Source: Fimbriosthenelais zetlandica
Taxonomy: Eukaryota
DNA: 64,000 nucleotides
Assembly: GCA_977030845.1 (NCBI GenBank)
Contig: OZ365109.1
Location: forward strand, 60,326,001-60,390,000
Direction of reading: 5' to 3'
Under the pieces are notes generated by a model. The model searched no databases. It was not told the DNA's origin and saw only the letters and a program-made list of their open reading frames with translations. Below are positions 40,801-61,800 of the stretch, in pieces. The stretch's first letter is position 1; each line of letters opens with the position of its first letter. The position numbers were made by a program, and so were the translations under genes.

Positions 40801-43800
40801 CAGGATCAGAATTTAGTAAGTCTCAAATGGAAATGGTTAATACAACAACCAAACAAATTATAAAAAGAACAAATATACAATTAAATGTCATTTTAATAGT
40901 GATCTCTTCTTTTTATAAAATAAAGGAATATAAAGGAACACTGTCGATACCATGGCGCCAATTGAGGTTTTCAAGATTCAAATTTTCAATGTTATGTTGT
41001 ATGCAGATTGTGCATGAATGATATGTGTATGCAGCTCATCATATCTTTCGTATTGAAATGTTCAATATTGCATATTATGAATGCATGAAATATATCTATA
41101 TAGGCATGCATGATATGTGTAAACAATATGTACATTAATTCGGAGAGCTAACGTATCTCCAGTGACTTTGTGATAGATATTAATGTATTATGGATTCAGT
41201 GTTATGAATCACGCTAGGTTCTAATTTGATGGGTTCCTTGGTTGACGATCCAAATACACTACATGACAATGCGCGTCGATACGTGAAAAATGCTATAGCA
41301 GTAATAGCCAGCGTGGACGGACACCTGACCATGGGTCAGAGACCTGCTCCATTATTATTAAAATAACTAAATAAATGAAAATCCCACTTTCAGGTGTCGA
41401 CGTAGGAGGTGGTGAGACAGGGGCAACAGGTGCAACAGGAGTCGCAGGCGTTGCAGGACGAACTGGTGCAACTGGACGCCCAGGTAATATTAGAGGACAA
41501 GCAAACATAATAATTATGTATAAGATTAAATGGTTCATCCATGATTACGCAGAAAATATTATGATGTCCTGATTGAGATATATTATATTCATATTAACAT
41601 AATGATTTGGATGGTTGATTGATCATGCTTGAGAGATAAAATTGATATGTTACTGATAGTTAATAATACTTTTTTAGGTTCTCCTGGTGGAGGCATTGGA
41701 CCTCAAGGTGCCACAGGAATTCGTGGTCCCATTGGATTTACTGGCCCACAAGGTCCTCCGGGACCAGCAGGTGGAGGTGGTGATGGAACTGGTGGTGGAC
41801 CTGGAAGGACTGGTGCATCAGGAGCAACAGGTGATATTGGGCCAACTGGTGCCACAGGTTCCATTGGACCAACCGGGCCCTCTGGTGTTACTGGTTCTAC
41901 TGGTCCAACAGGACCTACTGGAGCTACAGGAACTCGCGGACCTCTAGGTAGGACAGGTGCAACAGGCGTATCAGGAGTCCCAGGTACACCTGGTTCATCA
42001 GGTCAACCTGGCCCTGGTGGGAGAGATGGACGAGATGGAGCAACTGGGCGACCAGGTGCTATCGGCCCACCCGGTCCTCCAGGTCAAGGTACTAGTGGGG
42101 CCACCATACCAGGCCCAGAAGGAAGGACAGGTGCCACAGGAGCCCAAGGGAATTCAGGTCCGACAGGGGCAACTGGGACACAGGGACCCACAGGGCCAAC
42201 AGGAGCAACCGGTGGAAGAGGCCCAACTGGGCCAACTGGGGGTACTGGTAGTCGAGGAGGACCTGGACGTACAGGTGCTACTGGAACAGCAGGCCAGCCA
42301 GGTCCAGTTGGTTCAACAGGCATAAGAGGAGATCCTGGAAGAGATGGTCAACAAGGCTTTACTGGTTCCAGAGGTCCACCTGGTTTCCAGGGTGCCACTG
42401 GTTCACCTGGAATTGGTCAACCTGGATTACCTGGAGACCCAGGTAGGCCAGGAGGACCTGGGGGATTGGGGCCTTCTGGACCAACTGGAGGTACTGGAAC
42501 AACTGGGCCCACAGGACCAACAGGTGCAACTGGATCATCAGGACCAACTGGTCCCACTGGTGGTACTGGATCTACCGGCCCCCTTGGCAGGACAGGCGCG
42601 ACAGGTAAGCTAAAAAAACATCTACTTCAATCATCCCAAATACAGGCAGGATAAACATTGCCTTTCTGTAAATTCACAAGAACCTTTTCTTGATTAATAT
42701 ACAATCGAATGAAAAACAATGTCTCATATATACATTTTATACTCATTACAGGTCAAATGGGATCAACTGGTATTGCAGGAAGACCAGGTTCAACTGGAAC
42801 ATCAGGAGCAACAGGTCGCCCTGGTCCTCAAGGTCGTGATGGTTTCACTGGTGCCTCAGGTCCCCAAGGTCGAGACGGGTCTACAGGGCCAAGAGGATTC
42901 TCTGGAAATACAGGTGCAACTGGTACTGCTGGGTCACCAGGTACACCTGGAAGCCCTGGACCCGCTGGAGCCACTGGAAGGCAAGGTTCAGAAGGAAGAG
43001 ATGGACAACCAGGCACCCCAGGGACACCCGGCAGAGATGGACGAGATGGTGCAACAGGACCAATGGGTCCATCTGGTCCAACTGGAGGTACTGGAACAAC
43101 TGGGCCCACTGGACCAACTGGTGCAACAGGAACCACTGGGCCAACTGGTCCAACTGGAGGAACAGGACAAACTGGTCCTCTTGGAAGAACAGGTGCAACT
43201 GGACAGAGGGGTGCTACTGGTACAGCAGGCCCTTCAGGACCAGTAGGAGCAACAGGACAGCAAGGATCCAGAGGTCAACCAGGTTTTACTGGAGCTGCTG
43301 GCCCTGTAGGCCGTACAGGTGCCACAGGAGTTAGAGGCTTTCCAGGTTCAACTGGTCCTGATGGCAGACAAGGACAAACTGGGTCAACAGGTACAAGAGG
43401 TTTCACTGGGTCGACAGGTCCACTAGGTTTCACAGGTTCTACCGGTCCACTTGGACCACAAGGAAGACAAGGCAATGATGGAAATCCCGGAGGGCCAGGC
43501 CCTCAGGGCCCACGAGGGTCTGATGGACGGCCAGGCCCATCTGGCCCTACAGGTGGCACTGGATCAACTGGACCAACAGGTCCTACTGGTTCTACTGGAA
43601 CAACTGGTCCCACTGGACCAACTGGTGGAACTGGACCTAGAGGACCTGGTGGAAGGACAGGTGCAACAGGGACACAGGGACCACTTGGAGCAACAGGGGT
43701 TAGTGGACAACCTGGACCATCTGGATCAACTGGACCTCGTGGCCCTACTGGTGGCACAGGGTCAGTTGGCCCTCGAGGGCCAGAGGGTTCTCAAGGTAGA

Positions 43801-58800: not shown

Positions 58801-61800
58801 GGATTCACAGGTAGTACAGGTAACACTGGATCTACTGGACCCACTGGAAGGACTGGAGCCACTGGAAGCGCTGGTAACACAGGTGCTACTGGAAACGATG
58901 GAAGAACTGGTGCCACGGGAATAACTGGTCCAGCTGGAAGAGATGGATTTACAGGTTCAACAGGTCCTACTGGGCGTACAGGCGCTACTGGCAGAACAGG
59001 AGGAACTGGTGCCACTGGCTTCCCTGGACAAATTGGTAATACTGGTGCCACAGGTATTGCAGGACGTGATGGTTTCACAGGTGCCACTGGCCCAACCGGA
59101 CGTACAGGAGCCACTGGAGATATTGGACAGACAGGAGCAACTGGTCGAGATGGAAGAACTGGAGGAACTGGTGCTACTGGTGCCACAGGAAGAGCAGGTA
59201 TAACTGGAGCCACAGGAAGAGATGGGCGAACAGGTTCAACTGGTTCAACTGGATCAACTGGTCAACAAGGTAGAGATGGCTTCACTGGAGCCACAGGAAG
59301 AGATGGAAGAACTGGAGGAACTGGCTCCACAGGTTCTACTGGTCCTACAGGTAGAACTGGTGCCACTGGGTCAACTGGAGCAACAGGTCTTCCTGGTGAG
59401 AGTGGAACTACCGGTGCCACTGGGCCAACTGGTCGCACTGGTGCAACAGGATCCACAGGTTTAACAGGAAGGACAGGAGGTACTGGTCTCACAGGCCCCA
59501 CAGGTCGAACTGGAGCTACTGGAGCTACAGGTCTCCAAGGTAGATCTGGTGCTACTGGTACAACTGGTCCAGCTGGTCGTGATGGACGAACCGGAGCAAC
59601 TGGATCCACAGGTTTTACTGGAGCCATAGGTAAGATAATATATAATTCATGAGAATTTATTTGAGATAATCTAAATTTCAAAAACTCCAGCTATATTGGT
59701 ACTTACTTCCCGATATAAAGCAGAAACACAATAAAATTTGATATACTATTCTCGCACTCAATAAAGATGAAGGCTATTGTATAATACGTTATATCCATGC
59801 AGAAATGTTTCCCTACTATAATATACATTCCATATAGACTTCCTTACTACTAAATATGTATAATTATCCTGTTGGCACCTGGAAATGAAAGATCATCCTT
59901 TTGTAAATTTTTAGGTCCAACTGGAAGGACAGGTGCTACAGGATCGACAGGTGCCACTGGAAACCCTGGCAGATCAGGAGCCACAGGTTCAACAGGACGA
60001 GATGGACGTGATGGTGCCACAGGAGCCACTGGTATCGAAGGTCGATCTGGCAGCACTGGCGCTACAGGTTTTACTGGACTGACAGGAAGAACTGGCGGTA
60101 CAGGAAGTACTGGTAATACTGGAGTCACAGGACCAACAGGGCGTACTGGTGCTACAGGGAGAGTTGGTGCCACTGGTTTTGATGGACGCACTGGTGCCAC
60201 AGGATCGACTGGTGCCACCGGAATCCGTGGTCTAGATGGTGCTACGGGCCGTCAAGGTGACACTGGTTTTACTGGAGCTACTGGCACAGATGGACGAGAT
60301 GGTAGGACAGGTGGAACTGGAGCGACAGGCTGGACAGGTCCAGCAGGTCGTGAGGGTCGAACAGGAGCAACAGGAAGAGATGGTAGAGATGGTGACACTG
60401 GAGTAACTGGTCCCACAGGTAGAACTGGCGCAACTGGCCCAAGAGGATTCCAGGGTAACCAAGGTAACCCTGGTAGTGCTGGTTTCCCTGGACAGGATGG
60501 ACGCCAAGGAAATGATGGACGTACTGGGGCAACTGGTGCAAGTGGTTCAAATGGTTTAACTGGTGCAACAGGTGCAAGAGGATTTACTGGGGCTACTGGA
60601 CCTTTTGGTGCCACTGGAAATACTGGAAGAGGTGGACGCACTGGTGCAACAGGATCTTCCGGTTCATCAGGCAGAACAGGCTCTACAGGATCAACTGGTC
60701 CCACAGGAAGGACAGGAGCAACAGGATCAACTGGAGTAGGTGGTTTGACAGGTGCGACAGGAACCACAGGACCTAGTGGTCCGATTGGTTTCACTGGACC
60801 ATCAGGAAATAATGGCAGGACCGGCGCCACTGGTGTTCCTGGCCCAATAGGCCCCCCAGGACCAGGATTTGCTGGTGATTTGGCAGGTAAGCATAATTAC
60901 AAACTTTAAAATCAAAATTTCTATGCGATAATTTGTTTTTCATGAATTATTAATTCAACACCGAACGAACAGGATATCGGGTCCTATAATACTTATTTGT
61001 TCACTTGTTGCTTTAAAAAGTCACTCATATAATTTTATAAATAAGAATATGCACTTACTGAATACTATCAATCTTGGGAAGCTAATTTACTTGCTCATAA
61101 TACAATTCAGATGCAAGATGAATATCTACAGTATTCAGTAAATGGATATTTTATGCATGATAAAGACACTCGGAATAAAAATATATGGAATGTACCCATT
61201 TTGTCATCTATGTGACAAAATGGAAATGAACACTCACAGTTTCTCACTTCACAACTTTCCTGTCTGATATTTTCTTCTGCACATCTTTAGACTCCCTGAA
61301 TGGTAAGTGCTTAGAAACAAGGTGTGCCATAAAATATTTTAGGTTTAAAAAGGGGAATCGGTCTCAAGAAATCATACCTTTGTCAAAATAGATTAGATAA
61401 TCTTGCAAGGATTTCCTTTCCTGATTTTGTTTTCTTTCCTTGGAATCTTTCCTCCTATGTATATCAATTTTCGTTTTCAACTTTTGTGGAAATCATTTAT
61501 AATTTTCCTCCTGTCCCACTCTTGATGGAAACCATCAGTTGTACAGAACTTTGTATATTTATCATGACCTCCTTGCAAGATGCATTATATTATGTACTCA
61601 CGCACATTCTTTAGTAATTAGTAATAGTATAAACACAGTTAAATAGTTCTAAGTGGTTCGCCGAAAGTTTTTGTTTGAGAAGTCCATTATAATTGATTGA
61701 AACTTCGATTATATTTGTCGGGTAGTGTCCATGGATTGTTTTCTTTGTTAATATAAGGTTCATACTAATTTACGAAAAATACATTTTCGTGAGAATTAAG

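Follow-up and report, generated by a model that had tools for sequence, protein, structure and literature searches.

The cuticle collagens of annelids, textbook curiosities of long standing, form threads five to eight times as long as vertebrate collagen. The molecule of Riftia reportedly measures about 1.5 µm, a value that goes back to Gaill and colleagues, and other annelid cuticle collagens reach about 2.5 µm. According to PMC11766948, a very long triple helix is combined in these proteins with globular domains and a high mass (citing Gaill 1995), and in Riftia glycosylated Thr, not hydroxyproline (Hyp), dominates the stabilising positions (citing Mann 1996). Here we analyzed a window of 64,000 nucleotides, free of N, from Fimbriosthenelais zetlandica (contig OZ365109.1, positions 60,326,001 to 60,390,000 of the forward strand), which carries most of a gene for a giant collagen. 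We consider it probable that this gene encodes an alpha chain of a giant cuticle collagen of the annelid type and that the stretch from 42752 to 60886 (window positions, as throughout) is its helix-coding core. Like the cuticle collagens of Riftia and other annelids, the predicted chain combines a very long helix with a globular end, a high mass, and a preference for Thr over Pro or Hyp at the Y position of the Gly-X-Y triplets. The annelid collagens differ in being known as proteins and peptide fragments, whereas the present chain and its cuticle location are predicted from a gene sequence. Nor do descriptions of them mention a membrane anchor, EGF modules or a number of VWA domains, features that the present gene model has. 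No paper reporting the gene, the full sequence or a membrane anchor of an annelid cuticle collagen was found in the searchable literature. The protein class is already known; the complete gene, its indel-free conservation and its type-I anchor appear to be new.

Gly-X-Y repeats were located by a regular-expression scan of all six frames, and exon borders were then set by hand and by script. Runs of at least five triplets were present on the + strand only, from 41411 to 60867. Nineteen helix exons were placed on this strand: 42752-44380 (1629 nt), 44549-45457 (909 nt), 45580-46020 (441 nt), 46147-46578 (432 nt), 46682-47086 (405 nt), 47254-47838 (585 nt), 48078-48626 (549 nt), 48784-48999 (216 nt), 49212-49616 (405 nt), 49777-49938 (162 nt), 50266-50751 (486 nt), 50999-51340 (342 nt), 51527-51715 (189 nt), 51943-52788 (846 nt), 52982-53773 (792 nt), 53931-56099 (2169 nt), 56603-57844 (1242 nt), 57965-59629 (1665 nt) and 59915-60886 (972 nt). 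They add up to 14,436 nt, the sum given by the original prediction, which had been made from the sequence of the window. Every run of triplets begins one base behind an AG and closes with a G that precedes a GT. The 18 introns between the exons, of 103-503 nt, are all GT-AG and all in phase 1, so that each cuts a Gly codon after its first base. Spliced as far as 60860, the exons encode 4,803 aa, or 1,601 triplets; no stop interrupts them, and Gly occupies every register position. The original prediction had announced about 1,600 apparently uninterrupted triplets, with the reservation that compensating interruptions might be hidden in some exons. A scan of the spliced translation found none at the 1,601 positions, and the figure even turned out to be slightly low. 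Indeed, the perfect run starts within the upstream exon 41678-42604, after a GIG-QPG break, and with the 21 triplets located there it reaches 1,622 triplets (4,866 aa). At its C-terminal end the helix terminates with GPPGPG, followed by FAGDLA. Two helix exons matched the Pfam Collagen family PF01391 (E=1.8e-46 and 1.4e-73).

At 0.286 nm per residue, the perfect run would be about 1.39 µm long and all 5,139 collagenous residues together 1.47 µm, close to the value for Riftia, and the rod of about 1.4 µm proposed beforehand is a straightforward prediction from the helix length. The helix is about 4.8 times as long as the fibrillar helix of 338-340 triplets, in line with the "several times" first suggested, and about 3.5 times as long as the triple-helical domain of human type VII. 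Such a length is not without precedent, as very long annelid cuticle collagens are known as proteins (PMC11766948). It is true that every exon length is a multiple of 9, but this is not independent evidence, because phase-1 introns throughout and a register free of breaks make it inevitable.

The composition of the 4,803-aa helix is unlike that of a Hyp-stabilised collagen. Thr occupies 65.9% of the Y positions and Pro 4.4%, whereas the X positions are shared mainly by Pro (24%), Arg (18%), Ala (15%) and Ser (15%). With Pro at only 4% of Y, Hyp cannot be the main stabiliser of the helix. Overall, Pro accounts for 9.5% of the residues, GPP triplets occur twice, Cys and His are absent, and the charge is strongly basic (349 Arg vs 122 Asp+Glu). 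The helix is not a simple repeat: it contains 117 distinct types of triplets. Fourier analysis gave weak peaks only, for example at about 53 triplets with about 10 times the mean power, and we draw no conclusion from them. Lys is nearly absent (1 in 4,803), and lysine-based cross-links are therefore unlikely. The single Lys is residue 2730 (about 53,6xx), and that of the orthologue described below is residue 4785. Thus, what is kept between orthologues is the near-absence of Lys and not its site, and the idea of a special cross-link site at this residue was dropped.

An orthologue was recovered from another species, species Y, by walking 45 kb along the 3.96-Mb contig ctg39068 (ENA ERZ25767047). 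Eighteen of the 19 helix exons have the same length in both species, and the last shows a 6-nt difference just where the helix ends. By contrast, none of the 18 introns has kept its length. The alignment of the two helices extends over 4,803 aa and contains no gap; identity is 72.5% in this register and drops to 49-55% when the register is shifted. By position, identity is 100% for Gly, 49% for X and 68% for Y. At the codon level, third positions are 39% identical, with a synonymous divergence (dS) of about 1.37, a non-synonymous divergence (dN) of 0.26 and a dN/dS of about 0.19; for the 1,601 Gly codons, dN is 0. Thr makes up 67.5% and 68.3% of the Y positions in the orthologues. The collagenous region upstream of the helix shows the same pattern of runs in species Y (34 and 21 triplets). 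At the last interruption, which reads GIG-QPG here, species Y has 7 nt instead of 6 between the two Gly-X-Y runs and the frame shifts, at a place that lies outside the perfect run (orthoY about 1365-1373). Either the assembly is wrong by one base here or the two species truly differ.

A third species contributed evidence for splicing. Logan contig L011 (6.5 kb) is intronless and contains one open reading frame of 1,615 aa, in which 419 triplets are followed by EGF modules, a membrane helix, a tail and a stop. It is collinear with residues 4063-5723 of our model at 78% identity, shows no indel in the helix and crosses seven of the predicted junctions. Also, L011 is 99.8% identical to L012, a genomic contig from the same species, only from the predicted acceptor AG onward. 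Since it reads across the junctions and departs from the genomic contig at a predicted acceptor, L011 represents a spliced mRNA. L011 lacks the EGF-like exon 63433-63567, which species Y has in its genomic sequence; the exon is either alternatively skipped or subject to a lineage difference. Altogether, the reading frame is kept in three species and the exact exon lengths in two. The same exon lengths and a perfect register, with synonymous sites near saturation, exclude chance. To judge from these alignments, there is strong purifying selection on the register and the exact length of the helix, which excludes readings as an artefact or a pseudogene. The locus is one real, conserved gene.

The full gene model comprises 35 exons and 34 GT-AG introns (33 in phase 1), with a coding sequence of 20,835 nt free of stops and a gene span of 46.1 kb; its 3' end was read from the next 19 kb of chromosome beyond the window. 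The predicted protein has 6,944 aa, a mass of 658 kDa before glycosylation and a pI of 11.2. From the N-terminus, it consists of six VWA domains, a beta-sandwich domain, about 340 aa of interrupted collagen, the perfect helix, five EGF-like modules, a transmembrane helix and a tail, all encoded on the + strand. The globular end would be formed by the six VWA domains and the beta-sandwich, which precede the helix in a single genomic model with consistent intron phases; it is this model that links the VWA domains to the helix. The putative first coding exon (19859..20513) presents an ATG, a possible signal peptide and VWA domain 1 (Pfam VWA E=1.4e-6), and its phase-1 donor fits the chain. From the letters of this exon, translation plausibly starts at 19859 with a signal peptide, and a further exon upstream is possible. 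VWA domain 2 is followed by a linker rich in Pro, Thr and Ser (22227..22940, E=1.5e-11); phase-1 borders were chosen for this exon, and its donor is less certain than the others. The next VWA domains are numbers 3 (24196..24765, E=3.5e-18), 4 (26424..27005, E=6.2e-23), 5 (27799..28359, E=2.1e-23) and 6 (29254..29835, E=3.2e-17), the last three having GTGAGT donors in phase 1. Between the globular end and the helix exons, a first collagenous exon of about 10 triplets (41394..41483) precedes the interrupted one (41678..42604), whose last 20-21 triplets open the perfect run; together these two exons carry four short breaks.

The beta-sandwich domain (about 174 aa) adjoins the helix and is split over two exons, the first half at 31268..31566 and the second at 40116..40338, after the sole phase-0 intron of the gene (8.5 kb). 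It had no Pfam match, and a protein search detected 184 homologues at E<=1e-3 among 1.84 billion representative proteins. Both halves of the domain are contiguous in the full-length homologues P0172, P0183 and P0221. The latter, from Owenia fusiformis, is the sole named homologue and a distant one. Various architectures were observed in this family: signal peptide-domain-collagen (P0172), signal peptide-domain-transmembrane helix (P0183), and two copies of the domain plus VWA-collagen-VWA (P0167). The predicted structure of one homologue is a jelly-roll (pLDDT 94.8). A Foldseek search of this model against PDB and Swiss-Prot returned nothing at E<=1e-3, with weak TNF-like rows at a TM-score of about 0.3, and the VIA-align matches, to capsid or tail proteins of phages and to carbohydrate-binding modules, were generic (top Z 10). 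As these structure searches gave generic or weak matches only, we do not claim a trimerisation domain of the C1q/TNF type, and no function is assigned to the domain.

On the C-terminal side of the helix, four EGF-like exons lie in the window, of which two exceed the Pfam FXa_inhibition cut-off. Module 1 (62236..62397) has six Cys and phase 1-1 borders and is contiguous with the helix in L011, with no Pfam match when searched alone. Module 2 (62643..62816) matched FXa_inhibition at E=3.6e-6, and its junction is borne out by L011. For module 3 (63433..63567) the match reached 36.5 bits, above the cut-off, and for module 4 (63666..63803) 38.5 bits, together with EGF_CA at E=2.9e-4. Past the window end, a calcium-binding EGF exon (window-equivalent 65133-65258) is followed by the last exon (window-equivalent 65534-65994), which encodes the transmembrane helix and the tail up to a TGA stop. 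When the non-collagen C-terminal part of L011 was compared with proteins of 888-2,826 aa, a range that full-length relatives would exceed, only generic fibrillin-like EGF matches were obtained, with no named orthologue.

The last exon encodes a hydrophobic helix of 25 residues, the motif RRWR and a Ser-rich tail of about 95 aa. From the C-terminal position of the hydrophobic helix, with RRWR after it, we infer a single-pass type-I anchor whose C-terminus would be cytosolic. Three homologues of this exon were found, at 62-79% identity. All four species agree exactly in the transmembrane helix, in RRWR, in the block DSELGSNLGTEMGMD and in DATRL at the C-terminus. Such conservation of a cytoplasmic tail is unusual for a matrix protein. 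Also, the last three residues (TRL) fit the pattern of class-I PDZ ligands. The -DTRL end of CFTR is a ligand of the microvillar scaffold NHERF1, and by analogy the likeness suggests that the present protein may be anchored at apical microvilli. No obvious shedding site of the furin or dibasic type was seen in the sequence between the collagen helix and the transmembrane helix.

This architecture can be compared with those of other collagens. Vertebrate fibrillar collagens (I, II, III, V, XI) also have an uninterrupted helix, exon lengths that are multiples of 9 nt and a non-helical module at the C-terminus that allows the chains to begin associating. However, they have about 338 triplets, phase 0 introns, 54-bp units, a COLFI C-propeptide and Hyp at Y. 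No COLFI propeptide is present at the C-terminus here, which has instead the five EGF-like modules, the transmembrane helix and the tail. VWA-containing collagens (VI, VII, XII, XIV, XXII, XXVIII) share with our model VWA domains placed N-terminal to the helix, but their helices are short or interrupted and none has a C-terminal transmembrane anchor. Among them, collagen VII is an anchoring collagen of the epidermis. Its triple-helical domain, with 1,380 residues (PMC11923368), is the longest in human. Membrane collagens (MACITs XIII/XXIII/XXV, and XVII) are, as predicted here, single-pass membrane proteins with a collagenous ectodomain. They differ by their type II orientation, N-terminal anchor and interrupted helices, whereas the present chain would be of type I, with a C-terminal anchor and an uninterrupted helix. 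To our knowledge, all the membrane collagens described are of type II, and the type-I orientation is therefore unusual. According to PMC4678570, annelids and molluscs yielded no MACITs. Nematode cuticle collagens are also different, with about 50 triplets in interrupted blocks and conserved flanking Cys, according to PMC11766948 and PMC3308698, against 1,622 triplets and a helix devoid of Cys in our case.

Sequence similarity of the helix itself was of little help. When a helix exon of 723 aa was compared with 5.8 billion proteins, only bacterial and phage collagen-like proteins were matched, limited to 400-1,265 aa. These Gly-X-Thr proteins (BclA-type) gave the best matches to the exon, at 40-60% identity, but they have no introns and no VWA, EGF or transmembrane modules. 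In BclA, the Thr residues of the collagen-like region are glycosylated. We did not retain these proteins as relatives by descent, the similarity being compositional and uninformative on orthology. Within the same genome, the helix-exon query revealed many further Thr-rich giant collagen loci. For example, contig C38 contains two intronless frames, 5696845-5715489 (+) and 5734069-5753436 (+), of 6,215 and 6,456 aa, with signal-peptide-like starts. Their perfect runs reach 1,982 and 1,851 triplets and are made of simple repeats, among them (GATGDT)n and GWKGDK. More such loci are located nearby on C38, and on C39, C37, C1, C19 and C27. The helix studied here is thus not the longest in its own genome. 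The two frames on C38 belong to a different class of giant collagen, and their sequence is far simpler than that of the present helix with its 117 types of triplets.

The assignment to annelid-type cuticle collagens had to be weighed against other explanations. There is practically no probability that the locus is a misassembly, a pseudogene or a low-complexity repeat without coding function. Assembly errors are common in long repetitive genes as such, and nothing more specific speaks for this explanation, which conflicts with the identical exon lengths in an independent assembly of another species, a dN/dS of about 0.19 with no change of Gly codons, the spliced transcript of a third species, and 20.8 kb of coding sequence without stops that specify 117 types of triplets. 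It is also improbable, although less so, that this giant collagen belongs to a different matrix, such as tube, mucus or interstitial matrix or one associated with the basement membrane, in a lophotrochozoan that is not necessarily an annelid, Thr richness then being a lineage-wide trait. The many other Thr-rich giant collagen loci of the genome, with Thr at Y consequently not unique to this gene, and the simple-repeat, single-exon collagen genes with a signal peptide are in keeping with this explanation. Nevertheless, the predicted length and composition match the published cuticle collagen, and we know of no such other matrix with collagens of comparable size.

A somewhat stronger competitor, which we still regard as unlikely, is that the protein serves as a permanently membrane-anchored tether, that is a micrometre-long filament tying the apical surface or the microvilli of the epidermis into the cuticle, and not as a bulk fibre. 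Its role would then resemble that of C. elegans MUA-3/MUP-4 or of vertebrate collagens XVII and VII. The invariance of the transmembrane helix and of long stretches of the tail in four species, including -TRL, argues for a lasting intracellular function, and the set of VWA, EGF and transmembrane modules recalls MUA-3/MUP-4 (PMC2150771, PMC2150763), transmembrane EGF/VWA proteins found in epithelial attachment complexes. A tether would also agree with the lack of a visible dibasic shedding site between the two helices, and with the fact that the beta-sandwich domain and the tail exon are each single-copy in the genome. On the other hand, composition and predicted length fit an extractable cuticle collagen of the Riftia type, a tether has no obvious need for 1,622 perfect triplets, and shedding by a protease other than furin is possible on the sequence evidence. 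The annelid-type cuticle collagen thus remains the preferred explanation, with several points that count against it. A membrane anchor and a strongly conserved cytoplasmic tail would not be expected in a fibre collagen that is secreted in bulk. Glycosylation, the composition of the trimer and the length of the rod are predicted, and the start codon and signal peptide of the gene model are uncertain. Finally, the label "annelid" rests on the type of collagen and on one distant domain homologue from Owenia. A search with the annelid haemoglobin (erythrocruorin) linker family PF16915 gave no match, but its controls were silent too, and it carries no weight either way.

The original prediction had also raised the questions of how such a chain is folded and secreted. 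These questions are real, and they are sharpened by the C-terminal EGF-transmembrane-tail module and by the filling of Y positions with Thr. We propose that three chains would form a triple helix about 1.4-1.5 µm long, stabilised by O-glycosylated Thr at Y as in Riftia cuticle collagen, with the six VWA domains and the beta-sandwich as its globular end. The EGF modules and the type-I anchor could keep the three chains in register at the apical membrane of the epidermis. Reportedly, in work by Bann, Bachinger and colleagues, unglycosylated Gly-Pro-Thr peptides form no helix and galactosylated ones do. If this holds, where Thr becomes glycosylated may determine the place at which the rigid rod is built. 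According to PMC11923368, the collagen helix nucleates at its C-terminal end and zips toward the N-terminus. In our model, the C-terminal EGF array on its anchor would be the nucleation end, with chains concentrated in the plane of the membrane, and the finished rod would be either shed into the cuticle or left tethered. With Pro at just 9.5%, the slow cis-trans isomerisations would be about twice those of a fibrillar chain for nearly five times the length, and this low Pro content would ease the problem of folding time.

It is also conceivable, although we would not favor it, that type-I membrane-anchored giant collagens constitute a new class, characterized by EGF-transmembrane registration at the microvillar membrane, a PDZ-ligand-like tail that would hold the chains there, and a late helix gated by glycosylation. 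If so, the chains would be carried as flexible threads and the rigid rod would be built late, at or near the surface. Such a sequence of events would solve the secretion problem, and the microvilli would template the crossed fibre layers of the cuticle.

Whatever the exact role of the anchor, the locus gives the full primary structure of a probable annelid-type giant cuticle collagen, a kind for which we found no gene or complete sequence in the searchable literature. It shows that 1,622 triplets in a row, free of any interruption, are possible in an animal gene. As no indel has been allowed in 14.4 kb while silent sites are saturated, the exact length or the register matters. The gene may serve as a natural template for the design of Hyp-free, glycosylation-stabilised collagens, and models of how fast collagen folds and how large cargoes are secreted could be tested on it. 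Also, its C-terminal EGF-transmembrane-tail module would offer a concrete and testable answer to the question of how the chains of these giant collagens are registered, folded and delivered.

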